Assembly: GCA_016748015.1 (NCBI GenBank)
Contig: JAAOMT010000595.1
Span: 255,051-319,050, forward strand
DNA: 64,000 nucleotides
Reading direction: 5' to 3'
Source of the DNA: Geosiphon pyriformis uo1
Taxonomy: Eukaryota > Fungi > Glomeromycota
Part shown: one piece after another, positions 1,431 to 60,691 of the stretch
Layout: each line of letters begins with the position of its first letter
Position numbering within the stretch: position 1 is the first letter of the stretch
The notes under the pieces: model-generated
Database searches by the model: none
Seen by the model: the letters and a program-made list of their open reading frames with translations, nothing else
Told to the model about the DNA's origin: nothing
Program-made: the position numbers and the translations under genes

Positions 1431-2830
1431 ATAAGCAAAATTATATACCAATAAATTATATTCAATAGCTTTTTATTTATGCAAATTTACTTCAATAGAA
1501 ATAAATTATAATATTTATTACAAGAAACTTTTAACTATTGTTAAATATTTAAAAAAATAATGTCATTATTTAGTTAAACATAATTCAAAATAGTTGTACT
1601 TTGTAATCATAAAAGCCTGGATTTTATTATTATTTGAATGTTTAATAAAAAAACTTATTTGTTTTTATTATTAACTTTGTAATTAATTTTAATTTTTAAA
1701 ATACAATAATCAAATCAGATAAATTATAATTGCAAATATTTTATTTGTTTTTATGAATATGAATAAAATATTATTACAACTAATAAAATTTTATTTTTAA
1801 TTAAACAGCTTAGCACCTAATTTAATTCAGCAATTAAATAATTTTAATAAATTAAATAATTATATTAATTCAAATTTGAAAATTAATTATTATGCAAAAA
1901 ATTTCTAAATGTTTTTATAATAGTTCGAAATTTCCAGTTTTATAAATTTGTTATGACTTATTAATTATTAAACATTTTAAAAAATAAGAAAACTTTTTAA
2001 ATTAATTAATTGAAATTTTTGCTTGTTTAATTTAGAAATTTTTTAATATATATTTAAAAACAAAAGCAAAAAAAACATTAAAGTTTTATAGATTATTACA
2101 ATAACAATTAATTTTTATGAATTTTATTTTATAATATATAATAAATTACATTTTTTTAAATAAAATTGTTTTTAATTGTGTTTTCTAGTTTTTTTTTAAT
2201 TACTTAAATTATTTTGAACAAACATCAATTTTTTTACAGCTTTTTATTTATAAACTAATATTAAACAGAATAAATTAATTAAATTTTTACTTTAATAAAT
2301 AATAAATAATAAAAATTATTATTTTTACATTTTTAATTCTGTTTATTTAGTTTATTTTAATAATAATAGCAATTATGTAATTAAATTAAAACTTTTGCAA
2401 TTAATGTATTTTAAATTTTGAAATATAATTAATTAGAAAAAAGTTGTAATTGGTAAATAATTTATAAATTACAATTAATTACAATTAAGAATTGTAATTT
2501 TGTATATAAATTATAACTATTGTTAGAATTGTAATTGCTTTAAAGCTTAATGTAATATTGTTATATAAATAATAATTGGAAAAAATTGAAAAATAAATTT
2601 GAATTAAATAAAATAAATATAAATTACAGATGTAAATTTATATTAGTGTGGTATATTTTTTAATAAATTAAAAACAAAACAAACAAACAAACAAACAAAT
2701 AAATAAATATTATTTACATACAAAAAATTGAACAATTTTTATTAAATTAAATTGATCAAACAGATTATTAATTAAATAAAACTGGTTTTATTTTCTTAAA
2801 CTAATTCTAATATTTGATTTAAAAAAAACT
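1430..2830. repeat. C/G-depleted AT-rich tract, probable decayed transposon relic
   Basis: Non-periodic sequence nearly devoid of C/G and CpG; no ORF >=60 aa; sharp left boundary. Confidence 0.45.
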
Positions 2831-3319
2831 AACATGCCGTCAATTTTTAATTGTATAATTTATATTAACATACAGTAAAAGTGGTTCTATTGTAAAATGT
2901 TTCAGTTTTATGTACATTGATGGTTGGGCCGCAATAAAAAACACATGTATACATTAATAACATAATTTTAAATTTGGGTGTTTTATATTTTATGATAAAA
3001 ATAGTTTTTTCTTGACTTTTAAAATTTATTTTTAATTGTCAAAATCTAATAAAAGTTCTGTCACATTATCGTAGTGATAAGTGGACTATTCAAACTTAAA
3101 TTCTATTCATAGAATAATAGGTATAACTAGTCAGATCCTCAAAGAAAAAATGGTTTATGGCCGGTAATTTTTTTAGACATTTACGTTATCAAAATAGAAT
3201 AAAACTGATGATTTTCCTAATGGGATTTAAAATTAAACTATTGGGTTATTTGAAAGATTTTTTTTTGAAATATAAAGAATTCTTCAAATTATTAGCATTC
3301 AAAAAAACACTTTCTCAAT

Positions 3320-5496: not shown

Positions 5497-6297
5497 CAGT
5501 GTGGTGCAAATTTTTTTTTATAAAGACGTGAAAAAACTCAATTACAACAATTATATATGTAATTTTACTATAAAATTTTTAAAACCTGTACCAAAACTTA
5601 AAATTTTCAATTACATTTTTCTTATTTTTATTTAAATGCTTTAACTAAGTATGATTTAGTGTTATTTATATACATTAAAAACAAATTTAACGAATTAAGT
5701 TAATACAACATTTTTTGGGCCAAGTGGCTTAACAAAACCAAAAGAAATGATTTTACAATTTAAAGCCAAATAATCTGAATTTTAATACTTATTGCAGTAT
5801 TAACAATTAAAAGTTTTCTATTAACACAATTTTTTTAAGATATGAGTTTTAACAACAATGATATTAAGTATTTTTGGATATTTTCATAATAGTTAGACTA
5901 AAGTAATTGAAAAATAAAATATGTTTAATCATAATTATATTATTAATTTTATAAACTATATAGCCAAAAAAATTAACCAATTTGTTTTTAAAAGCATTTT
6001 TTAAGCAATGTTTTTGAAAAAATTTCATTATTGTTTTTTTTAACCAAATAAATTAGTTATTAAAAGTAAATTAACAAACATGAGTTTTAAATAAACAATA
6101 AGATTTTTATTAGTTTAAAATTAGTCTAAAAGATTATTATACAATTATTTTTAATGTCTATTATTAAGTTATTATTAATTAATATTAACATAAAATTTCA
6201 GATTTTATAAAATTAATTTTTTATTTTTAAAATTTAAATATAATATAATTAAAATTAGAATCAAAAATAATCTAATAATTGAATTTTTAACACATTG
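5497..6297. mobile_element. Heavily decayed Tc1/mariner-like element
   Basis: TA|CAGTGTGGTGCAAA at 5495-5510 resembles the TIR of the element at 59471. A degenerate reverse copy TTTTTAACACATTG|TA lies at 6284-6299. Confidence 0.4.
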
Positions 6298-6299
6298 TA

Positions 6300-8100
6300 A
6301 TATTAAATTAGATTTTGAATAGATTAAGATATTTTGATTGTTATATTTGAAATTTTTATTATAAAAGGCTGTTTAATTAAAGAGTAATAAATAACAGTTG
6401 TTTTATTATACATAAATAAAAAAAAAGTTTGTAACATATATATATAATATATTAAATATGCAAATTATTTTACAACAATAAAATTTGGTAAAATTTTTAG
6501 CAATATTTTAATAATTATTAAAATTAAAAAAAATATTTAGAAAAAATAACACTTTTAGTAATATATTTTTACAAATTACTTAACAATTATAATTTTATTA
6601 AATAGCTTAAGAGTATTTTTATTATTATCAAAAAATGTGTTAAATAAAATATTATAAAATACACAACAACAAAAACAAAAACAAAATAAAAAAGTATAAC
6701 AGATTTTGCAATCTTTAATATAATAAAAAAATAATCTAATTTAATTTTGATAATGGTATTCAAGATTTTTTAAAATGTAAATTTTATACAAAACAGTTTA
6801 ATATTGTTTTTTGTAACTAATTTAAAACTAATAAAATTATAAAACAATAAAAAAACAGTTTTAAAATAAGCCAATTTAATTTTAAAAAAAATGATTTTTA
6901 TTTTATTAATAATCTAATTTGTACAATCTAAAATATTTTGTATTATATAATAAAAAATTTACCAAAATTTTTTCATGTTAAAATTGATTATTTCAAATCT
7001 AAAAAAATATTTCAAAAATTTTATTTTAATACAAATTTATTTAAAATATAAATTATTTAATTTTAAAATAATCAAATTAAATTTTTACATAAAACATAAC
7101 TTTTTTCAATTTTATAAAAAAATAGTCTAAACTAATTGCAATTTTTAAAATAACAGTGTTAATATTTATAAAAAAATTTAATTTATTAATAAATATCATT
7201 ACAATAATTAAAAAAAAAATTGATCATTCTTATAAATATAAAACTTAAAAACAAATTAGCAAATATTTTTGTTTCTTAAACAAAGATACAAATAATAATT
7301 TCTTTAATTACTAAAGTAAAAATAACAAAATTATTATAAGATATTTTTAATAATAATGTATTGTTGCTATTGTTATTTATAACCAGATTGGAATTTATTA
7401 TTATTATTAAAGTTAGTAAAATAAAATTAATAAAAAATTAATATTGAATAAAAACAGTCTTTATATAAAGAAATTTGCTATTAGAATTAATTATAATAAT
7501 AATTGTTTTTTAACTGTCTTATTTTTTTGACTTTTAAAAAATGGTAAACATAATTAAAAAAGATAGTAATTTTATTACTGATTTATTTTTGAAAACACTA
7601 AGACTTTTAGTAGTAATTATAAAAATTTTAAAATTGTTTTTTATTTAAATAAAAACTTGACTGAAAAGAAACTTTTAATTAAAAGTGAAAAAAAGTGTTT
7701 TTAAAACAGTTAAAGATTATTTTAATTTAGGAAAAATGTTTTTATAATATCTTATTTAGCTGTTTTTATTACTAAAAAGACTTTTTCATTTATTGTTTCT
7801 TAGTTATATTATAAAAAAGAGTGAGTGTTTTTTTTCTGCTCTTATTGTAAACATAAAATTTAAAAACCCAAAATTTTTTTCTTAATTATACAATCAAAAA
7901 TTTAATGATAAATTTTTTATAATATAAAAAAATAAATTTACTTAAAACCATTCTATGAAATAACCTAATAAAATAAATTTTTATAAAATAAAATTATAAG
8001 AAATTTTTTAAAAAATGCTCTTATTTATTTCCTATTAAGAATATATATTTAAATTTTCCTTTTAATTAGATAATTATTTATAAAAAAAAGAATATCTAAT
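6300..8100. repeat. C/G-depleted AT-rich tract, probable decayed transposon relic
   Basis: Near absence of C/G, no ORFs, sharp end just past the HMG gene 3' region. Confidence 0.45.
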
Positions 8101-10759: not shown

Positions 10760-12097
10760 TTTTAAATTTTTGTTCTAGTTTTTAAGGTTGTTTTCTCTTT
10801 TAAATATTTCAATTGAATTTTATTAGCCTAAAGATTTGAGAGTACATGTATTTATAAAGAAAAAATCTTTAGATTTATAATGTCCAAGAATTTTTGTGTA
10901 TCCATTAGGATATTAGTAATACATGTACTTGCACAAACGGATAAATAATTAATCGTTCCTTCTAGAAACTTTTACTACTCTATGCTGATCTTTCATTTTT
11001 TTTGGAATTTTTAAAATTGCATGTTACTAAATCAAATTAATGATATTTTAACATACATATAATTTCATTTTTTTTTGTTTGATTGGTCTTCGTATCATAT
11101 AAACAATTCTTGTCAATAAGTTTTCAAAAATATCAATCTTGTAATAATTTTTAATACAGACAAAAAACAATTTTTTTAAGGCATTTGAGAAAATTCAAAG
11201 ACATATAATATAAATTTCAAAAGTTTATAATTGCAAAAAAATGGGTTTAAAGTATAAAATAAATAGATAAATATTTTTTGTCAAGATCTTACTAATTGAA
11301 AAAATGAGATATAAATATATGTATATATTTTTTACTAACTTTAATAAAATTTCGAATGGATTAAATTTATATGCTAAATGAAAAAATAGAGATGATTTTC
11401 TAGTATTATAAAAATTATTTTATAATTTTATAATAATTACATTTTAATTATGTGAGTTCATGATTAAAATAGTTAAATATATTTATTTGTAATTAATTAC
11501 ATTTATATTGTATTATACTATATTATATCATATTATATGAAATATATCTATTGTTTAATTTTGACAACATTAATCTTTAGTGTTTTAATAAAAAAATTAA
11601 TTTTTTATATTTTAGTAATATTTAGAAAAACTATAATACTGGTTTTTTATGATAAGAAGTTTTTCATTAAATATTTATGATAAAAACTTAATATCTGAAT
11701 AATTTATAATAATCAACCAATTGCTATTATTATTATTATTATTATTATTATGCAAAATATCATAGTATTTACATGTTATAATATTTCATCACCAAAAAAA
11801 TATAACAAATTTTTTTAATAACTAAAAAATATTAAACCAAACATACCACTTTAGAAAAATTGTTATGCTCATTTTTAATTTTTCTAATTTTAAACCAATT
11901 AAAACAAAAATTTTGTTTTTCAAGCTTAAACTGTGATCTTATTTAAAATAAAACTTATTGTAGGCACAAATCTGATTATCAACATTTTTAAGAATTCAAA
12001 AATAAAATGTTTAAATATTTTGAAAAATCAAAAAAGAAAAATTCTCCCTGCCCAAGGAAAGAGAGAAATATCAGTCACAATTTAAAATTTTATAATT

Positions 12098-21342: not shown

Positions 21343-22422
21343 TTAAAATCTGAAGCTATCAGATGTCTTTCTTGGTTCTGGAGAAATAAACCATCCAATT
21401 ATAGGTGAAACAACAATCTCCATTTCACCTCCTTCCCAGACACTCTCTTGTCTCGCACCTAAAAATCCTGCCGACATGTTCAAGTCTTCTGCCAATTCCT
21501 TCCCAATTAGTTTTAATTTAAATGGAACATTTACTCTGCCTTCTGGGACTTGATCAACAGCCAAGTAGTTTGTTGTTAATCTGTTTTGTTTTTTATCATA
21601 TGGGAAAAATGCCGCAATCCATCCTTCATACCGACGAAGTTCTCCGGATGCGTATCCTCTAGTTGACATTACTTTACTCCAAAATTCTTTATCGATTTCA
21701 CCACGATAGGTAGCAACAAATTTCCAAATTACGGGTTCTAATCTATCTAACCAGAAATTCATATCAAGCCCAAGTTGTCGAAGCCTGACAACTTTTTCTT
21801 GAAGTTTTTGCCAATCTTCTAAGGTTCCAGTAAGAGTAACTTTTGGAATTCCACATCCACCTCTCAAAGTGTAAGTAAAATATTTTTTCATAGCATCCAG
21901 TAAAACAATACGACTAGCGGTGATTGAAGCTTCGGAACTTGTAGAAAAGTCACAAACTAGCGTTTTAACAAGATCAACTTTTTCTACATTCTTTTCAACT
22001 TGGGCCACCAAAAGATTAACAGCTTTAGGCCAATCAAGGGGATCAACGAAGATTTCCAAATCTTTTTTTCCTTCATGTGCAACAAAGTGTGAACGTAATT
22101 GTTCAGCATTGATATTGATATGCTGACTAACACCTTGGGCAATCGTCAACCAAAGGTCATCGGGTGAAAGAGATAGATGTTGATGATAATCGTATGATTG
22201 ATGAATTGCTTGGAAGAATCCATGAGGTGTTTTGGTGTATTTCAGCTGTGTAGTTGGACTCTCATAACCTGATTGAGAATAATCAATTGAAATTGAATGG
22301 GCTATAGGAAATTTTTCTTTTATCTTTATGTGTTCAGCAAGTTTGTTTGATTGCTCTATATTGCTATCGATGATCTGAGTACTTCTTGGAAAAGCATTTT
22401 GGAGAATTTGAGTATAATTCAT
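21343..22422 (-). CDS. DUF4419-domain protein, intronless, 359 aa
   Basis: HGFFQAIHQSYDYHQHLSLSPDDLWLTIAQGVSQHININAE..R..FVAHEGKK, CDFSTS, CGIPKVTLTGTLEDW, GWIAAFFPY motifs. Confidence 0.9.
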   Translation of the reverse strand: MNYTQILQNAFPRSTQIIDSNIEQSNKLAEHIKIKEKFPIAHSISIDYSQSGYESPTTQLKYTKTPHGFFQAIHQSYDYHQHLSLSPDDLWLTIAQGVSQHININAEQLRSHFVAHEGKKDLEIFVDPLDWPKAVNLLVAQVEKNVEKVDLVKTLVCDFSTSSEASITASRIVLLDAMKKYFTYTLRGGCGIPKVTLTGTLEDWQKLQEKVVRLRQLGLDMNFWLDRLEPVIWKFVATYRGEIDKEFWSKVMSTRGYASGELRRYEGWIAAFFPYDKKQNRLTTNYLAVDQVPEGRVNVPFKLKLIGKELAEDLNMSAGFLGARQESVWEGGEMEIVVSPIIGWFISPEPRKTSDSFRF

Positions 22423-25252: not shown

Positions 25253-25762
25253 TCAAACTAATGAACCGGCCGCATGGGATCTATCCTCGATTGGTTTAAT
25301 CTTGAAATTAATCCCCACTCGAGCATTTAGCGGTGCACGCCAAGTTCCAAATATACTTTGTTTATTTTGCCCGGGTGTTCCGTACAGCGGAGATTGATGA
25401 TCATGTAAATTTTTTTCAATTGTATAGATCACAGTAAACATGAGCTTTTGTAAGGTGTTTGGATCACCCGATTCGCAACACAAGTTAACAGCTTCAACAA
25501 CACGTTGAAGTGTTGGGTCGTTGTTAATATCAGAATGTTTTATAAACGCGTAGAGCTGAGGTTGCGATAATTTGGGAGAAGTTTGAGCTGTCATAGGCGA
25601 TGCAGGTGGCGTCATAGAAGATGTTGGTTGTAGTGATTCAAAATCAAATAAATTTGAGTCTCTTGCGGGTGAAAGGGGTGGAGATGAACATGTAATTGAG
25701 CTTTTTGAAGAAATGGAAGATTCAGAGTTATTTATGGATTGAATTGAGAAAAGTGGTGCCAT
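25253..25762 (-). CDS. Hypothetical protein, 169 aa, Ser/Pro-rich N-terminus plus a small globular C-terminal domain
   Basis: Uninterrupted ATG-initiated ORF with coding-like GC content. Confidence 0.65.
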   Translation of the reverse strand: MAPLFSIQSINNSESSISSKSSITCSSPPLSPARDSNLFDFESLQPTSSMTPPASPMTAQTSPKLSQPQLYAFIKHSDINNDPTLQRVVEAVNLCCESGDPNTLQKLMFTVIYTIEKNLHDHQSPLYGTPGQNKQSIFGTWRAPLNARVGINFKIKPIEDRSHAAGSLV

Positions 25763-34709: not shown

Positions 34710-35858
34710 ATGTCTTCGACAATTCAAAAGAATGAAAAAACACCGCCAATATTCAGAGGTTTCCAACGCGAACAATTATCTGGATTTTTTAAACGACTTG
34801 AAAGCTCTTTTAAATATCTTTCAAAAGAAGTCACATCTACTGAAGAAACATTAAATGATGAGCAAATAAAGATATTGGAAATTTATCTCGCATCAGAAGC
34901 CAAACGTTGGTACAACAATGTAAATTGGAATGATTGGCAAAATGGAAAACCAGGTCCTATAAAGAATTCTATCTCACCAAAACCTGGCAGAGTTCCTGCG
35001 ACTTATGATCAACGAAAAGCCTGGATGTTTGAAAACTTCCCATTTCATTCCATTGGCGAAAAATTTCAGTATAAGGATTATTTGAAACAAGGTCCTTTAG
35101 AATCACCCAAAAATTTTTATCAAAGAATTGTTCACGTTTTAAAAGAGAAAGGTTTGAAGGATAATGTCATTTTAGAATCGAGATTTGTTGATGGCCTCTA
35201 TCCACAATTAAGAATTTATATTCCTCAAATTACCACGAAATCTATGAAATTTGCTCAACATGTTGATCGTGTTGACAAACAATTTCATAAAATGTGTCCA
35301 GAGAGTGATTTAATTCATTCAAAATCTGATTATGGAATTTTAAAATGGACAGGAGTCTTCAGTAATGATTCTCCTAAATCAGATGATGAAAAGTTTAAAA
35401 AACTCCCTCCAATGGGTGCAGTCCTTTGCCTGAAACAAGGATTCGACGAAAGTCCATGGGACTATTATATTCGGCTTGGAGATGCCTGCGAGCACGACGG
35501 TATAGATGTTGATCAAAGCCGAAAGCTATTGTTTTATCGTGGATTAAATGAAAAAGTTCAAGAAGAGGAAAAGGTTTGGAACGCTTCGAACCTTGAAGAA
35601 CAGGTTGCCATGGCACATCAATGGTGGATGAAGGATTATTGGAAGAATCGACATCACGAAGCTCATCTAGAGTTTGCCAAAAGCAAATATCATTATGAAC
35701 AAGTCGAAGAAACAGATTATCAATTTTCACATCCTCGCTACAGCGTTCTTCCACTCAATGGGGGTTCAGATGAATTTTTTTACGATATCATGCAACCGAA
35801 TGTTGACACTAGTCCAACATTTGCCATCGGAGATCCATCCACTTGTAGTATTTCTTGA
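34710..35858 (+). CDS. Retrotransposon Gag/capsid-like protein with two tandem CA C-terminal-domain repeats
   Basis: PPIFRG..E...FFKRLE..F, YLASEAKRWY, TYDQRKAWMFENF (CA-NTD pattern). LKQGPLESPKNFYQRI...FVDGLYPQLR and LKQGFDESPWDYYIRL...FYRGLNEKVQ (MHR/CA-CTD pattern twice). Confidence 0.75.
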   Translation: MSSTIQKNEKTPPIFRGFQREQLSGFFKRLESSFKYLSKEVTSTEETLNDEQIKILEIYLASEAKRWYNNVNWNDWQNGKPGPIKNSISPKPGRVPATYDQRKAWMFENFPFHSIGEKFQYKDYLKQGPLESPKNFYQRIVHVLKEKGLKDNVILESRFVDGLYPQLRIYIPQITTKSMKFAQHVDRVDKQFHKMCPESDLIHSKSDYGILKWTGVFSNDSPKSDDEKFKKLPPMGAVLCLKQGFDESPWDYYIRLGDACEHDGIDVDQSRKLLFYRGLNEKVQEEEKVWNASNLEEQVAMAHQWWMKDYWKNRHHEAHLEFAKSKYHYEQVEETDYQFSHPRYSVLPLNGGSDEFFYDIMQPNVDTSPTFAIGDPSTCSIS

Positions 35859-38167: not shown

Positions 38168-38674
38168 ATAGATTCGAAAGACAATATTGGTCATGGAACG
38201 GAGAAGTAGTATTCATTCTAGAGATCGATGAAAAATCTTAATTTTAATTATCTGTTTGCATAAATGTGTAAAGAGTGCATATTTGGCTTATTCCTAAATT
38301 AATAATTGCTAAACCGTATTAACTTGCAGTCGATATCGAATGCGAATAGCCAGTTGATTATTAAATATCTCGAGCTTTTGGAAGTATTTAACATATACAA
38401 CGCCTATTACCAGTGTACACGAATTTCTTGAGCAAATTTCATCGTAAAAAAAATTTCTCGTGGATTATTCACTCAAAACTTTTTCTCTCTCTCAATTGTT
38501 AAGCTAAAATATAGCGGGGAGTAAAATCCAGAAACATGTTCCGATTGTTCATGATTCGTGTTTCACAAAATAGTATCACTGCTTTGTAATGCATGACATC
38601 TATTTTAGGATTAGACGACCATCCTGACAATTGTCATATTTTTTAGTTTCAAAGTTTCCCTTTCATCTTTATTG

Positions 38675-39745
38675 ATGGCCTCCACGCTCCCTGTATTATG
38701 TCTTTACGAAATATTTCATTGTGTTCTTGAAAAACGGTCCCTTTATTCATGTGCCCAAGTGAGTCGCCATTGGTGTCAAAATGCGATTCCAGTTATGTGG
38801 CGTGAACCACTGCCGGTAGAATCAGCAGGGCCGTTTATTGAGACTTTACTTCGTTGCTTCCCCGAGACCAAATCTGAAAAACCTTTGATGTTCCAATACA
38901 GCTATTTTATTAAACAAATCTCTGTTACTTTATTTTACAAAGCGATTGTTCAATGGGCGAGAATGAATTGGACCTCTGATCAAGAAAAATCTCCTTTGAT
39001 TATTTCCAAGACGCTTCATTTTCTATTGCGTAATTTAATTATTCAGCCGAATGCATTTATTGATCTTGATATTGAATTTGATGAAGAAATTCAGGAAATT
39101 ATCGACAAAGAAAAAAGCGACTTTCAAACCTCAGAATGGAATCTTTTTACGCTTCCTGGTGCCGAGATTTCCCTTGGTCATTTGAAATCCTTAACAATCT
39201 TTGGAAAACAGAATTTAGAAATTCTTTTAATGGCTGGAAAAATTTGTCCTCGGATTGAATCTCTAAAAATTTTCGGAGATCCTCAGCACTTGTTTCCAAT
39301 ATTGCCAAAGTTGGAAAATTTTATTAATCTGAAGGATTTGCACATTGATAACATGGGATTCTATACTTTATGGGCTGAAGATTATCTCAAAGATCTTGCC
39401 AAACAACTGCCTAATACTTTGGAAGGTATATACATTTATGACGACTTAAACTTCTCACCAGATGCTTTAGCGCAATTTTATGAGGGGCTTAAGCATAGAA
39501 GTCTTTTATCCTGCTCCCTACCAAACTCAGAATGCATCTCTGATAAACATTTAGATGTTTTTGCTGAATATGGGAAAGGGAAGCTGACTATTCTTGATAT
39601 CGGTGAGGCTCGATATGTCTCGAGGAAAAAGGCTGACGAGTTACTTGATATGGGCATTATTGTTTATGTGAGAACTTACTGGGATGAGGAAGAATGGGAT
39701 GAGCAATTTAATTTTTTGACTTATCAATTGAGATACCCTTTTTGA
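38675..39745 (+). CDS. F-box/LRR (RNI-like) protein
   Basis: MASTLPVLCLYEIF...LYSCAQVSRHWCQNAIPVMWREP, PLMFQYSYFIKQI, LRR-like C-terminal half. Confidence 0.88.
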   Translation: MASTLPVLCLYEIFHCVLEKRSLYSCAQVSRHWCQNAIPVMWREPLPVESAGPFIETLLRCFPETKSEKPLMFQYSYFIKQISVTLFYKAIVQWARMNWTSDQEKSPLIISKTLHFLLRNLIIQPNAFIDLDIEFDEEIQEIIDKEKSDFQTSEWNLFTLPGAEISLGHLKSLTIFGKQNLEILLMAGKICPRIESLKIFGDPQHLFPILPKLENFINLKDLHIDNMGFYTLWAEDYLKDLAKQLPNTLEGIYIYDDLNFSPDALAQFYEGLKHRSLLSCSLPNSECISDKHLDVFAEYGKGKLTILDIGEARYVSRKKADELLDMGIIVYVRTYWDEEEWDEQFNFLTYQLRYPF

Positions 39746-40250: not shown

Positions 40251-41783
40251 TCAATTACTAATATCATCTCTCAACTCCCTATAATTGATCTTAATTACTG
40301 GTATGAAGATTTTTGCATCTCTAAAAGCTGATCTTGTCACATAATAAGCATTGTTTATATTCAGTTCGTACAAATGACTGGCGTATTTTCGCACCACAGC
40401 CAAATGTTTATCAGAGAAAAGCGCTGAATTTGTAAAAGAAAGCCTCTTAAATTTTGCTTCAGTATTTTTGAAAAAGTGCTCCAATGACGCAGGTGAAAAT
40501 TTTAAATTTAAATCAATTGCTAGGTCTATAATTGTGGCTGATAAGATTGAGCCTAAGCGTGGGAGAAATTCCTCAGCTTCAATAGGAGATGTTGACAGTT
40601 CCCGTGTGATATGAAGAGTTTTCAAATGGTTAAAAGAGCGAGCGACCAAAAGGATAGAATCAAGTTCAGGTAATGAACATTCAAAATGGGCTAGATTTAC
40701 AAGGTGTGTGATATAAGACTTTACCAATTCGCTAGATGGAAAGCCACCTTTTATAATGACCCACTTTTTGAGACAGTGTCCAGCATTTTTAGCAAGAGCT
40801 TGAGCAAAGTTAACGCAGTATGTAGTATTATTAATTTCGATACTCTCCAGGCAAGATATTGAATTGGTTTGGATATCTTCTTCCGCAACATCCGCAAAAT
40901 TCCGACAATCTTGAATTAATAAAAATTTCAAATTGACGCATTTCTTAAGTAGTTTGATTAAGGGATATCTGTTAAAATTAAAATCTATGAATTCCAGTTT
41001 AGTCAAGGAACTTGAACATTGGTTTAATCCATGAAATAAAAGGTTGGGATTGCCATTGAATTCAGCAAGTCCAACATGGCTCAGTTTTTTTTGTACTAAT
41101 AGGAGGATGCTCAGAGAATCTGCTCGCTCTTGTGCCACATTTGTGTCTGAATATTGGGAGGAAAGGGTAAGAACCAAGCTTTGAATTTCATGTGAAACCT
41201 TAGCAGCTGATAAAAGCATTTGTGGAGGATAGGCTTCGAGTAAAAACAAAATTTCTAGCTTCCGAAAAGAATTTTCTGCGCCTTCAAACGAAAATACATC
41301 CCATGAGCTGTGATCCCAATTATTTTGGTTAAAAGCGATTGCGTATACAAAGTCACTCGACAACTGTGTAATCTTGGACGAGCAACGAACCAAGTGCCTG
41401 CAAAAGGTATTTAAAACTAAATTTTCAGATGAATTTCCAGCTCTCATTTCACACCAATCAGATATAATCCTTGAGAGGCTTTCAATAGGAAGGTGTCGAA
41501 GAAATTTGGTATATGGAAATAGTGGATGTTGCTGGGCGATTGTTGGTAATCGATTACCAATTTTTTCTTTTTCTTCTCTTGAGAAACAAGCCATTGATAT
41601 ATCGATCAGATGTAAGCAGGATATATTCCCGCTGATAATTTTAAATGGTTCTTGCCACAACCGATGTATGGCATGTTGACACCAATATCGGTTGATAAAA
41701 ATGCAAGCGTATAGAGTCGGTGTGTGATTATCAAGTGCATCAAAAATTTCGTCAAAGCATAGAGTTGGTAAAGTGGAAGCCAT
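40251..41783 (-). CDS. F-box/LRR (RNI-like) protein
   Basis: MASTLPTLCFDEIF...LYACIFINRYWCQHAIHRLWQEPF, PLFPYTKFLRHL, LRR repeats; paralogous to the convergent neighbour. Confidence 0.9.
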   Translation of the reverse strand: MASTLPTLCFDEIFDALDNHTPTLYACIFINRYWCQHAIHRLWQEPFKIISGNISCLHLIDISMACFSREEKEKIGNRLPTIAQQHPLFPYTKFLRHLPIESLSRIISDWCEMRAGNSSENLVLNTFCRHLVRCSSKITQLSSDFVYAIAFNQNNWDHSSWDVFSFEGAENSFRKLEILFLLEAYPPQMLLSAAKVSHEIQSLVLTLSSQYSDTNVAQERADSLSILLLVQKKLSHVGLAEFNGNPNLLFHGLNQCSSSLTKLEFIDFNFNRYPLIKLLKKCVNLKFLLIQDCRNFADVAEEDIQTNSISCLESIEINNTTYCVNFAQALAKNAGHCLKKWVIIKGGFPSSELVKSYITHLVNLAHFECSLPELDSILLVARSFNHLKTLHITRELSTSPIEAEEFLPRLGSILSATIIDLAIDLNLKFSPASLEHFFKNTEAKFKRLSFTNSALFSDKHLAVVRKYASHLYELNINNAYYVTRSAFRDAKIFIPVIKINYRELRDDISN

Positions 41784-42199
41784 GGTTTTTGTATTTTAAA
41801 ACTACATAATAAATACATGATAAATCGAAGATGGAATATATGGTCACAAAGTTTAATGGTGGTTTAATCCGTGTAACGATTAAAATGAGTGATCTTCACC
41901 AATTAAATTTTTTTGCAGAGTCACCTTATACTTGGATAGGTTTCTGTGACCAAGGTCAAATCAAATACAAGATTAAAGAACAAGACTAAGTATCCTTTTT
42001 ATTGAAGCAAGCAAAATAATGTAAAACTTTTTGATATCTATACACAGTTCAATAAGGATAAGTTGTTGGGAGAGAAAATGCCCATTTAATCTTTCAATAG
42101 AAGTACACTCGCTTCCAAATATAGACATTAACAAAGATTTCCAGAGAGTTGTCCCAATTTGTTAATTTAAATTAAAAATTCCAATCCTATTTGGTATTT

Positions 42200-43550
42200 G
42201 TCCCGATTGTCTTGTAATTAATTGAATATTTTAATTTTTTGGCAATTAGTTAAATTTAATACAATGCTTTTGTAATAACTATAAATAATTAAAGATAAAT
42301 AAAATCAAATTGTACATTATTTCTATTTTATTTATTTGCATTATTGCAATAATTTTTATCTTTGTTCTTTTTATTAAAAATCACATTAAATGTATTATTT
42401 AAATTTTTTTTTATAAATTTTTTTTTGTTTTCTTACTGCTTTATTTTGAATATTAAATAAAATGAACTTTACAAAACTAAAATAAAAAAATCTTATTTAT
42501 CTAGTAATTAAAATACAATACAAAAAGATTTGGATTTTATTATAATTATAATAAACAGTAAAAATTTATACTAAAATATTTTAATTTTGATTAAATAATT
42601 TTTTGTTTTTAATCAATTTAGTGTTCTTATTATATTTTTTAATTTATTTTTAATAAATGTTTTTTAAAATAAATTTTTATAAAAATTAATAAGTATTTTT
42701 TAGACAAATTAGTTTATAGTTTATTTTTTACTCATAAAAATAGGATTAAATTATTTTATTGAAATCTTTTTTTGGGTAATTTATAAATTTCAACATAATT
42801 TTTCAGGACATTTTTTATAGCTGTTTAATATTTTTATTTATTACTTTTCAATATTATTATATATATTTTATAATTATTATTGATCAAAATAATATACTAA
42901 TGAATAGCAGAAAAGAAAGAAAAGAAAAGAAAAGAAAAGAATTTAAGCAAATTTCAAAAGAAAATTAATTAATTTTTTTTAAAAAAAATCTGAAAGTTGA
43001 AGAATAATCTATAATTGCCAATAAAAAGAATAAAGCTGCTATAACTCTATGTCTCAATTGGTGCTTTTTAAAATGCGATAACAGATATTAATTATGTTTA
43101 AAAATTATTTATTTAAAAATATAATAAAATTCTTCAGCTAATTTTACCAAATACAAATAAAAAATAAAATTTAACTGTTATTTTGATTTTTTTATTCTAA
43201 AATATTCAGATTCAAAAAGAAGGAAATAAAATAATTAAGAAAAAATTAATAGCTTTTTTTCAAATATTTTTACAGTTTTGTAAAAGTCTTGCTTATATAG
43301 CTTCTAAAAAAGGCAAAATGACCAAATCAATAAATAAGTCAACAATTTATTCAATTATCAGACTATTTATCAAGTCATATTTATTTACTAACATTTTGAC
43401 AATCTTTCTTTCACTTATTATTAATTATTAATCTATTTTGAGTCATTTAATTGATCACATAAAATCTTTTTATAGTTTTTGGTGGATTAACTTTCAAATA
43501 ATGACCACTTAATTTTTATATTATTTGGTCAGTGAAAATTTTATTCTCGG
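42200..43550. repeat. C/G-depleted AT-rich tract, probable nested DNA-transposon relics
   Basis: Composition; short inverted motifs such as TGACCAAAT / ATTTGGTCA near 43319 and 43523. Confidence 0.35.
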
Positions 43551-46445: not shown

Positions 46446-47289
46446 GTAGGTTTGAATTTTATTTTGGTAAGCGTTTCAATAAATCTCGTCAACTTTTTCT
46501 CTAATTCTCGTGAGTCGGAAACGCCAATTCAATTTTGTAGTTGAGAATTTTTTTTTAGTTTGCAAATCATGATTAATGCATTCCAAAGCATGTGGATCCC
46601 CGAAATTTTCACAAAAACATCCAACATTTTGGTGAAGAGAACGACCAGTTTTGATATCAAAAAGAATTTTCAACACATACCAACATGCGAAAAGCTTGCA
46701 ATTTAGCCGGGATCAACTATTAGTTCATAATCATTTCCATTCAGGAATAGGTTATTAATCTATGATGGCACATTTTAGTTTTTAACGCTTTTTAATGTAT
46801 CAAGGCCGGTGGTATAAGTAACTTATTTAAGAAAAATTTTTCCAAAAAATTTGTCAGCTAAATAATTGATTCTTTGAATATTTGTTAAATCATAATAAAA
46901 TATATTATAATTTGAATGTTTCTCAAAAACATTATCATCCATTTTTATTTTTTTATTTTTTAAATATTATAAATTTTAAATTTTAAAATTGATATACAAA
47001 ATTTGAAATATTTTTCGGCCTTTAAAAAAATAAGTTTAAAAGTGGTAATATAATATTGGATTACATTTTAAAACACTAAAAAGTTGAATTAAACTTAAAA
47101 TAATGATGAAATAAATTTTTCTTTTAAACGAAAAAAAGTTAATATTAATAAAAATATTTTAAAAAATAGTAATGACCAACAGTTTTTACCTAATTTATTA
47201 AATATTAAATAAATAAATAAATATATATATATATTCAAATATTCAAATAAAAAAATAGTAATATTATACAAAAATCAAATTGTATTAAA

Positions 47290-47330
<41 letters not shown>

Positions 47331-48686
47331 AATAATCAATTAATATTCAAGTCAATTAATTTTAAAAATTAGATACAACAATATTTTTTATATTTTATTC
47401 TTTTTATTATTTAAATAATTTAAATAAAATAAATATATATATTAATCATATGGTACAGAAATTTATACTTTTTTTACCATTATTTTTTTAATCTAATAAA
47501 AAAGAGTAAAATAATTCTTGCGATTTCGATGTCACGATAAAAGTTTTTTTTTTTCTCTTCTCTTTGAATCGTTAATTTTTGATGATTAATAATCTCAAAA
47601 AGTTCGTATTTATTCTGTACATATTTAAGGGGAATTCCCTTTTTTTACCGAAATTTAGTTCTAGATCTTGGTTGAAATGATTTTTTCAAAAAAAAAAAAG
47701 AATATTCGATTCAAACCAATTTTTAACTAATAAAGTATATTTTGACAAAATAATGAAATTTGAAATAAAAATAACATATTAAATTCGTATTTGTTTGAAA
47801 ATGGCGTCTTGATTCTTCCAAAGTTTCGGAAGATCTAAAATGATATATGGATTATATGGATCATATTTTGCTCTAAAAAAAAAAATTTCTTTGTATAATG
47901 TTTAATAATTTGGAAATTTTTTTCCCCAAAAATAATTTATTAATTAAAAAGCAAGAATAAAATAAATAATTATATGTATGTATTTATCAATAGGTCAAAA
48001 AGAATCTAGAACTTTTTTAATGGTCTTTTCAATATCGATATCAAGAATCACCCAAAAAAAAAATATTTATGGGATTACGGCTAAATTGGTTTTTAGAATA
48101 GATCTAGGATAAATTTAAAGAAGATTTCTCGTTTCGAAAGTATTTAATTAAAAAAAATATATATTAAGTGAATCAAAGTTTCATCATAAATTATTGTTTA
48201 TGATGATGGATAGGGATAAAATCTTTTTCAAGATTAATTTTAGTCAGTTATTCAATTTTCCAGATTCTGTAATAAAGAAATCAGGCTTAATTTATCCCCC
48301 GTAAGCCGATAAATTGAGTCTAGACCTTCAAAAAAAGAAAAATTGTGGAATAAATAATTCAAAGACGCCTAGTTCTATTGCAACGTTTGGATATTTTTGT
48401 AAGATTGCAATTAAAATGTACAATAGGAAAATGATGGAGACAAAAAAAGACATGAAAGAATTGCGTCTTCTTACATTCTGAATTCTCAAAAAGGAGTCAA
48501 ACGGCATAAACATTTTTCGAAATTCTTTTTTTTAATTATTTACACATGAGAATTTTTTGAAATTGATTCTAGATTAATGCAGAAGCAGCAGGCGTATTAA
48601 AACAAAACAACCATTTCAAGTGTCGGGTGTTTTTCTAAATATGAATTACTGAGAAATTGGTTGTTTTCATAAGATTCTTTATGGAA

Positions 48687-51446: not shown

Positions 51447-52494
51447 ATAAAAACATCACTATAAAAACTTGACTACTATATGATTCACAATCGTCAATAT
51501 ATGAAAATGAGGGACTTTGATACGTCACTTTCCTTACCCTATTTTAGATAGATATAGGCCAATCTAGACCGATCCTGAAAATTCGAGACAATAATTGTTG
51601 TGTAATATGCAACGCGTGCGTTAGTAGATCCTTGAGTTGGGGATGCTGGGATTTTCTGTCAAAAAGAGTGATAAGAAAAAATTTTTTGGTTTCACAAGAG
51701 AAAAAAAAAACGAATGGATGGGGGAGAATGAGAAAGATTTTTTTTTTGAAATTTTCAATGTTATAAATCTCATAGAGTAAACAAAATACTTAGTTTATTA
51801 TGGATAAACTTCATTCAAAAAGATATTCATTTTTGTAAAAAAGTTTTAGAATTTTTTTTACTAAAATAGACATAATCAGGAAAATCATCATATATTAGCT
51901 GAGAATAAAAAACATTTTTTTTTTTTTGATGGGTTATGGTAAAAAGAAAAAAAATATGGTAACCAGAAATGATTCAATTATTAAAATTGCTATTTTTTGA
52001 ATTAGTTTTTTAATCGTGGGTATTTGAAATTCCTTTTCTTTTTTTTTTTTTTTTTAAAGAATTCAATTCAAATAATTCAAATAATACAACTAATATAAAA
52101 TCCCTACTAATACAACTAAAACAAAATACCTTTTATGCACTCCTGATTTTTTTTAACATAAAATAATAGAATATCACTTTTTAATATATGATCTCGAAGT
52201 GACATGAACAACAATAACAACAAGAACAAACACAAGGTTAACTCCAAAATACAAAATTACACAACAGCATACAGCATTATAAAAAAAAAATACTAAATTC
52301 CAAAATAGGAAAAGTTCGACAAGTAAACAAACAAAAATTGAGAAATTCAAAAATTTTTCGAATGGTCTCGACCTTTTAATAAAAATTTTTTTTAAGCCCA
52401 ATTGTATCTAAAGGGGTTATAAAGAAGCCTAGTCTGTCGAGTTCAAAAAAAATTAGTTTGTAATAATAATCTATATATATTCCTCCTTTTTTCC

Positions 52495-52535
52495 TCATCA
52501 TCATCTTATTATTATTACTACTACTACTACTACTT

Positions 52536-52573
<38 letters not shown>

Positions 52574-52575
52574 TC
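52495..52575 (+). repeat. Compound (TCA/TTA/CTA)n microsatellite
   Basis: Direct observation. Confidence 0.9.
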
Positions 52576-53000
52576 CCAATTTCTCTTTTCAATAGAGATA
52601 AAATAAAAATAAATAATAAAGTAATTATATAATTGCATTAAAATTGTAATCAACTACCCCACATTTGATTCACTCACTCATAAAGAAGAAATTTAAAATA
52701 AAAGATTGTCTAATTGTACTTTAAATCAACAACAACAACAACAACAACAACTTTGCATTTTTTTCACGCGCGCGCGCTCATTCTCACTATCACAATCATC
52801 AATCATCGTCATATTTTATTATCAAGAAAAAAGTTCTATATAAACTCTAGCCCGTCCCCCACTCAAAAAAATCAAAATCATCTCTAAAAGTTTATACAAT
52901 CAAAGGAAAAGCATAAAACTCTTTGACAACTTGTAACAATTTAACATACACACACACATACACACACACATACATACATACATACATACACACATTCAAA

Positions 53001-59470: not shown

Positions 59471-60691
59471 CAGTGTGTTGCAAAAAGAATTGGACAGAAA
59501 AAAATAATCACTGTGCTTTATCCAATGCACCAAAAGAAATAAATTTTATACCATTAGAAAGCTAAAAAGCACATGATATTCTTTCATCCTTATTCGCAAT
59601 TATCATCTCACAATGGTGTTTCATTGATCCCACTAACCCAATTAGGTATAAACTGCTCTAATTCATCCAGATTTTTGGGCATACGCTTCTCCACATTCCT
59701 TTTCACAATAGCCCATAAGTTTTCAATGAGATTCAAGTCAGGACTATTAGATGGCCAAGCTATAACTTCAGGCATATTCTCTTGAAGAAAGGCTTCGGCT
59801 AGACGGCTTGTGTGCTTTGGGTCATTGTCCTGTTGAAACCGCCACTCATTCCCTAACATTCCTCTTATCTCAGGTAAATGTTCACGAGTAATTTCTACAT
59901 AGAACTTAGCATCCATTATTTGGGTAAAACAAAATAAACTTACCTTTTCTTTCTCATAAAAACCACCCCACGCCATAATATTTGTTCGATCTTTTGGTAT
60001 AGCACGAGTTGGTCGCTGGCCTTTATACCAACGTTCTACTGTATTTCGGAATAGACAAAAAGCTGTTTCATCCGAAGAAACAGTTCTTTTCCAAATTATC
60101 ATTGAGATGTTCTTGAGCCCACTTTACACGATTTTCCTTGCGGAGATTTGTGAGCATTGGAATTGCCAAAGGCAAGTCTTTTATATCCATGATTAATTAA
60201 ATGCCTTTGGATAGTACTAGGAGAAACGTCTACATTCTTTTTTGCTAATTTTATTTTCAAAGTCCTCAAAGATATTGAAGAATCTCGACGGAGGTATTGT
60301 CCTAATGTTCGTGATGCATCTTTAATTTTTCGCGGCCGACCATTTCCACCCGCATGCTCCACCATCCCTGTTTTTTTGAGTTTTTTAAGGATATGATAGA
60401 TAGTTGAGCGTAGTATATTTGTTCGCTGTTTTATTTCAGTTGAGTCTCGTATCCCTTCATTCCAAAAATATAATACGGTTTGGCGCTGTGTTTCTTGCTT
60501 GGAAGGTAGCATTGTGCAAGGAAATTTCTAAAAATATCATTAGTAAAACGCGCGAAAAAAATTTATCATATTTAGCCACTTATCTTAACATTCACTTCCT
60601 AATTCAACCGCCAAAAACTAACTAAAATTTGTTAAACTGTATCAAGTTTTGTGATGTGCATTTTTGGCCAATTTTTTTTTGCAACACACTG
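59471..60691 (-). mobile_element. Full-length Tc1/mariner (DD34E) DNA transposon, 1221 bp
   Basis: TIRs CAGTGTGTTGCAAAAA...ATTGG at both ends, TA target-site duplication (59469-70, 60692-93), internal transposase. Confidence 0.95.
59608..60512 (-). pseudogene. Tc1 transposase, frameshifted
   Basis: HTH and GRPRK N-terminus (60099-60512) plus DDE domain SSDE / QQDNDPKH / WPSNSPDLNLIENLW (34 residues between D and E), split across frames. Confidence 0.93.

Follow-up and report, generated by a model that had tools for sequence, protein, structure and literature searches.

The adoption of retroelement capsid genes by animal hosts is well established (Arc, PEG10, PNMA). Wang & Han (2021) have catalogued three co-opted gag genes in fungi, of which two derive from copia and one from Bel-Pao elements; the Ty1/copia cases belong to the Dothideomycetes and the Bel-Pao case to the Tremellomycetes (PMC8321522). 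No Ty3/gypsy-derived fungal case and no repeated capsid domain is described there, and its text is silent on both Glomeromycota and Mucoromycota (PMC8321522). Here we analyse a gene of the glomeromycotan fungus Geosiphon pyriformis that lies on a 64,000-nucleotide stretch of contig JAAOMT010000595.1 (assembly GCA_016748015.1), hereafter the window. The gene probably encodes a domesticated Gag protein that is kept as a host gene and acts through capsid-type protein-protein contacts, a reading to which we assign a probability of roughly 0.7. It resembles the fungal genes of Wang & Han in being single-copy, syntenic, gag-only and under purifying selection (PMC8321522), but while those are copia or Bel-Pao derivatives, the window gene has a doubled capsid C-terminal domain (CTD) and most likely goes back to a Ty3/gypsy element. 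It would add a deep, syntenic fungal case to a catalogue in which no entry is of Ty3/gypsy type and none comes from a mycorrhizal phylum (PMC8321522).

The domesticated capsids of mammals comprise full capsids, the N-lobe alone (LDOC1, RTL8) and capsids joined to nucleocapsid and protease (NC/PR) regions, and a tandem CTD is not mentioned among them (Henriques et al., PMC11011659). Arc, PNMA, RTL/SIRH and PEG10, which are domesticated Metaviridae capsids, are like the window gene host genes built on the capsid fold, Arc also lacks a nucleocapsid, and the model of the second CTD module of the window protein superposes on the capsid-like CTDs of PEG10 and MOAP1. Beyond the fold, however, no sequence relationship to the Arc, PNMA, RTL and PEG10 proteins is detectable, and the window gene would represent an independent fungal domestication. 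Ty1 p22/p18 and DRT2 are likewise fungal and Gag-derived, and in these the CTD is the active part (PMC13709905). They consist of the CTD alone, derive from Ty1/copia, are young (within species) and are near-identical to their target (PMC13709905), whereas the window gene keeps the N-terminal domain, has two CTDs and appears ancient; an element that matches it closely was not found. In the SCAN domain of vertebrate zinc-finger proteins, a capsid CTD has been reused as a host dimerisation module (PMC11011659), but SCAN is a lone CTD fused to unrelated domains, while the window gene keeps the whole capsid and doubles the CTD. The Gag proteins of Ty3/gypsy elements (PF19259, PF03732) share with the window protein a collinear N-terminal domain and a CTD with the major homology region (MHR); in contrast to them, the window protein has no direct Pfam match, pol or LTRs (long terminal repeats), and its second CTD appears to replace the spacer and the CCHC zinc knuckle. 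The tandem-CTD arrangement is absent from the catalogued variants of domesticated capsids (PMC8321522, PMC11011659).

Gag ancestry and domain layout

The protein has a probable N-terminal capsid domain followed by a first CTD, a variable linker, a second CTD and an acidic tail; the MHR is kept in both CTDs, and the knuckle, pol and the LTRs have been lost. Its parts are given below with their isoelectric points (pI).

34710..35858 (+): whole gene, a single exon of 382 codons plus stop with an ATG start, in agreement with the gene model of the source record
34710..35045 (+): N-terminal capsid-like domain, residues 1-112, pI 9.4, aligning with transposon Gag residues 2-90
35046..35309 (+): putative CTD module 1, residues 113-200, pI 9.2, joined to the N-terminal domain without a break when the whole protein is matched to Gag
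35088..35129 (+): MHR motif 1, QGPLESPKNFYQRI, from a pattern count and a profile alignment to the MoMLV MHR peptide 1bm4
35310..35405 (+): variable linker, residues 201-232, separating modules 1 and 2, with a predicted local distance difference test (pLDDT) score <30
35406..35669 (+): predicted CTD module 2, residues 233-320, acidic (pI 5.2), the most constrained part of the protein
35436..35477 (+): MHR motif 2, QGFDESPWDYYIRL, inside the nearly invariant block GAV.C.KQG.DESPWDYYIRLGDACEHDG.DVD
35670..35855 (+): acidic C-terminal tail, residues 321-382, pI 4.3, not basic and without a knuckle

The gene model in GCA_016748015.1 / JAAOMT010000595.1 is identical to this open reading frame (ORF). 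Stop codons make up 7.2% of the codons in the six frames of the AT-rich window, which gives a 382-codon open frame a probability of ~4e-13; therefore, chance does not explain it. The GC content of the coding sequence is 36%, compared with 26-28% in the immediate flanks. The N-terminal domain carries the conserved motifs P.FRGFQRE..GFF.RLE.SF, ILE..ASEAKRWY, WN.W and ATY..RK.WM..NFPFHS, and the tail has conserved short motifs as well (Y.QV, Y.FS..R.S.LP and D.F..D.MQP). In the linker, residues 201-227 are 13-22% identical to the Ambispora orthologues introduced below, with insertions and deletions. There is no Pfam zf-CCHC match in the protein, and none of its four cysteines stands in CX2CX4HX4C spacing. 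An earlier, sequence-only reading of this stretch had described a clean 382-residue ORF without a CCHC knuckle and without the C/G decay of relic tracts elsewhere in the window, and the frame and the missing knuckle are confirmed.

Cysteines and histidines are also found at invariant positions in or just after module 2 (C240, C260, H262, H315 and H319; 35427-35669), but their spacing fits no canonical zinc knuckle. The likeness of the segment 'NRH..AHLEF' to the nucleocapsid knuckles of HIV, obtained with a profile (A5), was considered as a relic knuckle and rejected, as the signal comes from the CCHC rows of two transposon Gags in that profile (P0005 and P0006, see below) and the family has no cysteine ligands. 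An unsupported antisense ORF of 119 amino acids lies inside the gene (35395-35754, -); the composition of the coding strand most likely accounts for it.

A Pfam search with the single protein gave no match, even at E <= 10. When 1.84 billion cluster representatives were searched exhaustively by HMMER, a profile of three sequences, the window protein and its two Ambispora orthologues, detected four further proteins (P0004-P0007), and outside the family itself transposon Gags alone were matched. P0005 (E 2e-8) and P0006 (E 8e-8) are Gag proteins of ~330 amino acids, each with a CCHC zinc knuckle, and on contig L003 an aspartyl protease ORF lies downstream of the P0005 gene. P0007 (E 5e-4) is a 176-residue protein of Blakeslea trispora that matches the Pfam family Ty3_capsid at E 2e-6 with 27.8 bits, which is below the curated cut-off of 29.1 bits, and it is surrounded by chromodomain-bearing Ty3/gypsy remnants on L004 (Blakeslea trispora JAIWNE010000129.1). 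We take P0005, P0006 and P0007 to be transposon Gags because of the CCHC knuckles, the aspartyl protease ORF, the Ty3_capsid match and the Ty3/gypsy surroundings.

The remnants around P0007 on L004 include an ORF of 1005 amino acids that spans reverse transcriptase (RT), RNaseH, integrase and chromodomain and, on the opposite strand, an ORF of 697 amino acids with a Retrotrans_gag match.

When the family alignment (A1) was compared with the alignment of the transposon Gags (A4) by hhalign, residues 3-176 of the query aligned with Gag 2-151 at a probability of 98.5% (E 1.8e-15). The motifs PTF.G...E....FF..LE..F, NVNWN, ATYE.RK, ESP..FY.R and F..GL.P.[IL]R are common to both, and this motif-by-motif correspondence of the family with the Gag alignment is convincing. 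Furthermore, the protein begins directly at the capsid without a matrix domain, as P0005-P0007 do. The gene descends from the gag of an LTR retrotransposon, and the source element was most likely of the Ty3/gypsy type. The sequence-only reading had inferred a Gag ancestry, which holds in the profile search, in hhalign and in tblastn (E down to 1e-13). It had also seen a Ty3/gypsy-type pattern in the N-terminal capsid domain; Pfam does not detect such a pattern, which depends on homology to transposon Gags, one of them just below the Ty3_capsid threshold.

Among the PDB sequences, the single protein matched designer pentatricopeptide proteins alone. No individual stretch of these matches passed by itself, and they were set aside as an artefact of summing repeats around 'KEKGLKDNVI..FVDGL'.

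Two capsid C-terminal domains and their origin

The spacing of the retroviral MHR, Q-G-x2-E-x4-[FY]-x2-R-hydrophobic, is present in both modules. When all six frames of the 64-kb window are translated, the pattern QG..E....[FY]..R[FILMV] has exactly two occurrences, and both (nt 35088 and 35436) fall within the ORF. Compared directly, the modules show a weak likeness, with 13/39 (E 1e-3) and 10/25 (E 2e-4) identical residues in BLASTP and an E of 0.002 at 13% probability in hhalign. Two CTDs are nevertheless accepted because both modules, each in its own right, are homologous to one and the same part of Gag. Module 1 alone (A2) matched the Gag alignment at E 5e-7 over Gag 101-150, and module 2 alone (A3) at E 3.7e-11 over Gag 98-169, with 72 columns and no gap. 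In tblastn, each of the three Gags gives two matches in the window ORF, and the same Gag residues (~90-170) are involved for both modules: the first match runs from Gag 3-165 to nt 34740-35264 (E 1e-13 to 6e-12), and the second from Gag 90-174 to nt 35397-35630 (E 1e-5 to 1e-4). At both Ambispora loci, the same searches match the N-terminal region and module 2, except that P0005 matches module 2 alone on the A. leptoticha contig (L001).

When module 1, module 2 and Gag are aligned jointly, with three segments of each, the E-S-P, R and G-L positions are invariant, and the best PDB matches of the joint profile are the MHR peptide of the MoMLV capsid (1bm4, E 0.0014) and the capsid CTD of MLV (6gza, E 0.003). 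In addition, the Ambispora orthologues have weak Gag_p24_C matches at the position of MHR motif 1. The related transposon Gags have one CTD, then a long low-complexity spacer and then the knuckle; the doubling of the CTD is thus specific to the host gene.

Structure prediction agrees with this assignment, most clearly for module 2. A construct of residues 228-335, modelled with AlphaFold2 (AF2) from a ten-row alignment (A6), reached a mean pLDDT of 83.8 and a predicted template modelling score (pTM) of 0.71, with pLDDT 90-96 over construct residues 11-80. In the Foldseek listing, the 50 best PDB matches are capsid CTDs or capsid/Gag chains throughout, including those of MLV, HTLV-1 (8puh, TM 0.70, root-mean-square deviation (rmsd) 2.6 Å), HIV-1, BLV, PEG10 (7lga, TM 0.65) and MOAP1. 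The matches listed have probabilities of 0.92-1.00, TM scores up to 0.70 and E-values of 0.014-0.18, and such modest E-values are expected because the domain has ~80 residues. In the viral structure library, almost all matches of module 2 are Gag proteins, among them ORF1 of a Penicillium metavirus. Module 2 is accordingly modelled as a capsid CTD fold. The sequence-only reading had seen two similar modules here, and the mapping of both to the same Gag residues together with the predicted fold of the second agrees with this.

The full-length AF2 model, made from a seven-row alignment, has a mean pLDDT of 47.6. It contains a helical block at residues 11-110 with pLDDT 61-88, and values of ~65-69 over much of module 1. 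Foldseek places capsids throughout among the 50 PDB matches listed for this model (MLV, HIV-1, EIAV, HERV-K, dArc1, Arc). The match to the MLV CTD 6gza has an rmsd of 2.2 Å over 79 columns, for which the output does not specify the aligned query region, and this lower-confidence model supports a CTD fold for module 1. Matches to two-domain capsids (MLV, dArc1, Arc) are weak (E 0.016-0.4), and the sequence of the N-terminal domain matches nothing in the PDB; a capsid fold is likely for this domain.

Module 2 ends in a predicted helix of ~30 residues that overruns the domain (35592-35681, residues 295-324; pLDDT ~70) and that Foldseek pairs with a helix of immature HIV-1 Gag, the one at the CTD-SP1 junction (6n3j, 6bhr). 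A PDB match of the module 2 profile to the helix A-B region of KCNQ1 (E 0.04-0.2) was judged to be due to chance.

How the second CTD arose can be read in two ways. Internal duplication followed by unequal divergence is favoured with reasonable confidence, while the alternative, in which the second CTD was captured independently from a different Gag and the gene is chimeric, is possible but tentative. In favour of a capture, each module is closer to transposon Gag domains (24-33% identity) than to the other module (18-21%), and a small maximum-likelihood (ML) tree does not make the modules sisters, module 1 grouping with the Blakeslea Gag and module 2 lying towards the CCHC Gags. Moreover, the stretch W..A...AHL...Y that follows module 2 is collinear with what comes behind the CTD in P0006. 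On the other hand, the separation in the tree has weak support (77/80), and constraining the modules together costs a mere 2.2 log-likelihood units (approximately unbiased (AU) test, p = 0.21), so that a single origin is not rejected. Unequal rates, seen in the ratios of nonsynonymous to synonymous substitution (dN/dS, 0.38 for module 1 and 0.10 for module 2) and in the long stem of module 2, can also mimic a separate capture. The term 'duplicated', which the sequence-only reading had used, therefore stands as far as the presence of two copies is concerned, but the two may instead go back to two captures.

Host retention and possible roles

In a word-indexed search of 5.8 billion protein clusters, the window protein has two relatives, P0002 from Ambispora leptoticha (372 amino acids) and P0003 from A. 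gerdemannii (377 amino acids), with 47-49% identity over 96% of its length. P0004, which the profile search found at E 6e-34 and for which a look-up gave no contig, is a fragment of 142 amino acids whose source label consists of SRC and an SRR-run accession; we take this label to denote a protein-level assembly of soil sequencing reads, and it says nothing on expression. Across the 5.8 billion protein clusters and the 1.84 billion representatives, which are protein collections, each genome contributes one full-length member. Word-indexed searches of proteins with A5 and with A4 gave no additional members, scans of JGI metagenome contigs with A1 and with A3 found no relative, and there is no second copy of the ORF in the 64-kb window. 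Among the annotated proteins searched, the family appears confined to the window species, to Ambispora (Archaeosporales) and to one fragment of unnamed source.

The neighbourhood of the gene is shared with Ambispora, where L001 is a 13-kb contig of A. leptoticha and L002 carries the A. gerdemannii locus. The neighbouring genes of the window are:

25253..25762 (-): synteny marker gene; 25289-25555 matches L001 3008-3274 (-), 51% over 89 amino acids
31091..32122 (+): synteny marker gene; 31466-32068 matches L001 1537-2149, 69% over 71 amino acids
36392..38349 (+): class-3 lipase gene, the downstream neighbour, 534 bp past the stop codon and not part of an element
38672..39745 (+): F-box-like gene, synteny marker, orthologous to L001 6499-7590 (+) and L002 4289-5383 (+)
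40251..41783 (-): inverted F-box-like paralogue, synteny marker, matching L001 8345-9622 (-) and L002 6472-7758 (-)

Four other genes of L001 have matching genes no more than 10 kb away from the window gene, and the gene order in A. gerdemannii is the same as in A. leptoticha. Compared with Ambispora, the order in the window is locally rearranged, and the lipase was not seen in the Ambispora contigs. Five genes co-occur within ~17 kb, and the locus is therefore orthologous rather than similar by chance. The inverted pair of F-box-like paralogues adjoins the Gag-derived gene in all three species, and in Ambispora the second F-box-like gene is divergent from the Gag-derived gene at a distance of ~380-400 bp.

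In the window and in both Ambispora species, the gene is one uninterrupted frame. For A. leptoticha, an intron of 69 nt is annotated (L001:10094-10162), but this segment keeps the frame, contains no stop codon and encodes residues that align with both other species; the intron is probably a misannotation, and the product is likely to have 395 amino acids. No direct repeats were found at >=40 bp within 30-41 kb or at >=60 bp within 24-46 kb of the window, and there are no LTR-like repeats at any of the three loci. Downstream of the gene there is no protease, RT or integrase, the next gene being the lipase. With tblastn, no related Gag was found in the window or at the Ambispora loci.

Selection was estimated by the counting method of Nei and Gojobori (NG86) for the pair A. 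leptoticha and A. gerdemannii, and the values for this pair and for the wider comparison are as follows.

Whole gene, Ambispora pair: dS 0.32, dN 0.096, dN/dS 0.30
N-terminal domain, Ambispora pair: dN/dS 0.26
Module 1, Ambispora pair: dN/dS 0.38
Linker, Ambispora pair: dN/dS 1.17
Module 2, Ambispora pair: dN/dS 0.098
Tail, Ambispora pair: dN/dS 0.30
Whole gene, window species and Ambispora: proportion of synonymous differences (pS) 0.73-0.76 (saturated), dN 0.39-0.41, dN/dS not reliable

These ratios point to purifying selection on the gene, strongest in module 2, where a block of 35 residues (GAV.C.KQG.DESPWDYYIRLGDACEHDG.DVD) is almost invariant despite the saturation of synonymous sites. 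Since the frame is intact and this block has hardly changed over a saturated synonymous divergence, the gene would encode a functional protein of which the second CTD is the most important part. With syntenic orthologues, no LTRs or pol, low copy number and signs of purifying selection, the gene would count as co-opted by the criteria of Wang & Han (2021). The sequence-only reading had noted the missing protease, RT and integrase, a lipase gene about 530 bp on and the lack of an LTR pair, and had proposed that the gene is retained by the host; the lipase distance, the repeat searches and the flanks at three loci agree with the former points, and the synteny with two Ambispora species, the single copy per genome in protein collections and a dN/dS that is not near 1 argue for the latter. 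On sequence evidence, the gene appears to be a host gene of an early-diverging glomeromycotan lineage comprising the window species and Ambispora (Archaeosporales).

Capsid CTDs are the dimerising elements of retroelement lattices, and alone they serve as interaction modules, as in SCAN, p18 and DRT2. The window protein may oligomerise or bind a conserved partner through capsid-type interfaces. Because CTDs are dimerisation modules and each chain has two, CTD1 and CTD2 could form an intramolecular pseudo-dimer, or the chain could act as a bivalent, cross-linking unit of a lattice. Module 2, being near-invariant over saturated synonymous divergence, would be the functional core, and its partner is probably the protein itself or a host protein. 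This module would occupy the former position of the spacer and nucleocapsid. Canonical RNA packaging is unlikely, since the protein has no knuckle and the acidic module 2 and tail lie at the nucleocapsid position. A role as a cellular scaffold or in assembly is favoured over RNA transfer or transposon restriction because CTD2 is constrained and RNA packaging is unlikely.

The main rival to a scaffold role is lattice poisoning, in which the protein would co-assemble with the Gag of a resident Ty3/gypsy-like element and its extra CTD would block or mis-link the lattice. The protein is built of domains that mediate Gag-Gag contacts, Fv1 and enJS56A1 are Gag-derived restriction factors of mammals, and the window holds transposon debris (a DDE_3 fragment). 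Moreover, a bare capsid CTD suffices against Ty1 in fungi, and DRT2 is domesticated and under purifying selection (PMC13709905). However, poisoning of the Ty1 lattice needs near-homotypic pairing and is escaped even by sister subfamilies (PMC13709905), whereas the closest transposon Gags found here reach no more than 24-33% identity in the CTD and neither the window nor the Ambispora loci hold a related Gag. The near-invariance of module 2 does not fit an arms race, and the gene is old and syntenic, whereas the DRT2 locus is dynamic and young. The restriction hypothesis, which we consider unlikely, is weakened by the conservation of module 2, by the age of the gene and by the lack of a closely matching Gag (best 33%).

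An assembly like that of Arc or PEG10, a closed particle that would move RNA or a different cargo from one hyphal compartment to another, or to a plant or cyanobacterial partner, is more improbable still. The complete capsid unit of N-terminal domain and CTD is kept, the N-terminal half is basic (pI 9.2-9.4), and Arc itself has no nucleocapsid domain (PMC11011659). Against such a particle, the protein has no nucleic-acid-binding domain, and an RNA capsid becomes less likely because the C-terminal half, in which module 2 and the tail would face the interior, is acidic. In addition, the extra C-terminal load of 180 residues per subunit is without precedent in known capsids. That the gene was never domesticated, and is the remnant of a solo gag or a non-autonomous retroelement of low copy number left intact by chance, would agree with its transposon origin, its lack of introns and the missing Pfam annotation. 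Yet the frame would stay open by chance at ~4e-13 per species and is kept in three, dN/dS is 0.30 with a domain-wise structure, the neighbourhood is conserved, LTRs are absent and each proteome has one copy; a non-domesticated relic is effectively excluded.

Several points nevertheless weigh against reading the gene as a host scaffold. Purifying selection is compatible with restriction, and yeast DRT2 is under purifying selection too (PMC13709905). The dN/dS values come from a single pair of close species and a counting method. The superfamily assignment is weak, with the Ty3_capsid score under the curated cut-off and L003 too short to include an RT. The Gag rows in A6 lean the module 2 model towards the capsid fold, although homology is shown independently by hhalign. 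The N-terminal fold rests on a medium-confidence model and transitive homology, and the poor full-length model (pLDDT 47.6) does not give the relative arrangement of the domains.

A bolder version of the scaffold reading, which we hold tentatively and with some doubt, is that the gene is an ancient Ty3/gypsy-type capsid domestication, the first reported from this superfamily in fungi and the first in Glomeromycota, and that its tandem CTDs build a new assembly with a cellular function specific to the Archaeosporales. Such an assembly could be a capsid-like lattice with two layers or with cross-links, or an adaptor closed as a pseudo-dimer. Because the CTD drives lattice formation and is the active part of p22 and DRT2, a protein with two CTDs would be a natural experiment in the rewiring of capsid interfaces. 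The family is tiny and occurs in fungi that are hard to manipulate, and its role is read from sequence and models; the gene, however, is small, intron-less and easy to express, and oligomerisation, particle formation and Gag poisoning are directly testable.

Other features of the window

An ORF of 164 amino acids with a DDE_3 transposase match (59608-60102, -; E 5e-14) is a DNA-transposon fragment unrelated to the Gag-derived gene, and an ORF of 359 amino acids at 21343-22422 (-) carries a full-length DUF4419 domain (E 4e-76). At 52001-53000, a GC skew of -0.45 is explained by the simple repeats (TAC)n, (CAA)n and (ACAT)n. Tracts of 12-16% GC lie between genes of 30-36% GC at 2001-3000, 6001-8000, 11001-12000, 42001-43000 and 47001-48000, and these may be the 'relic tracts' of the sequence-only reading.

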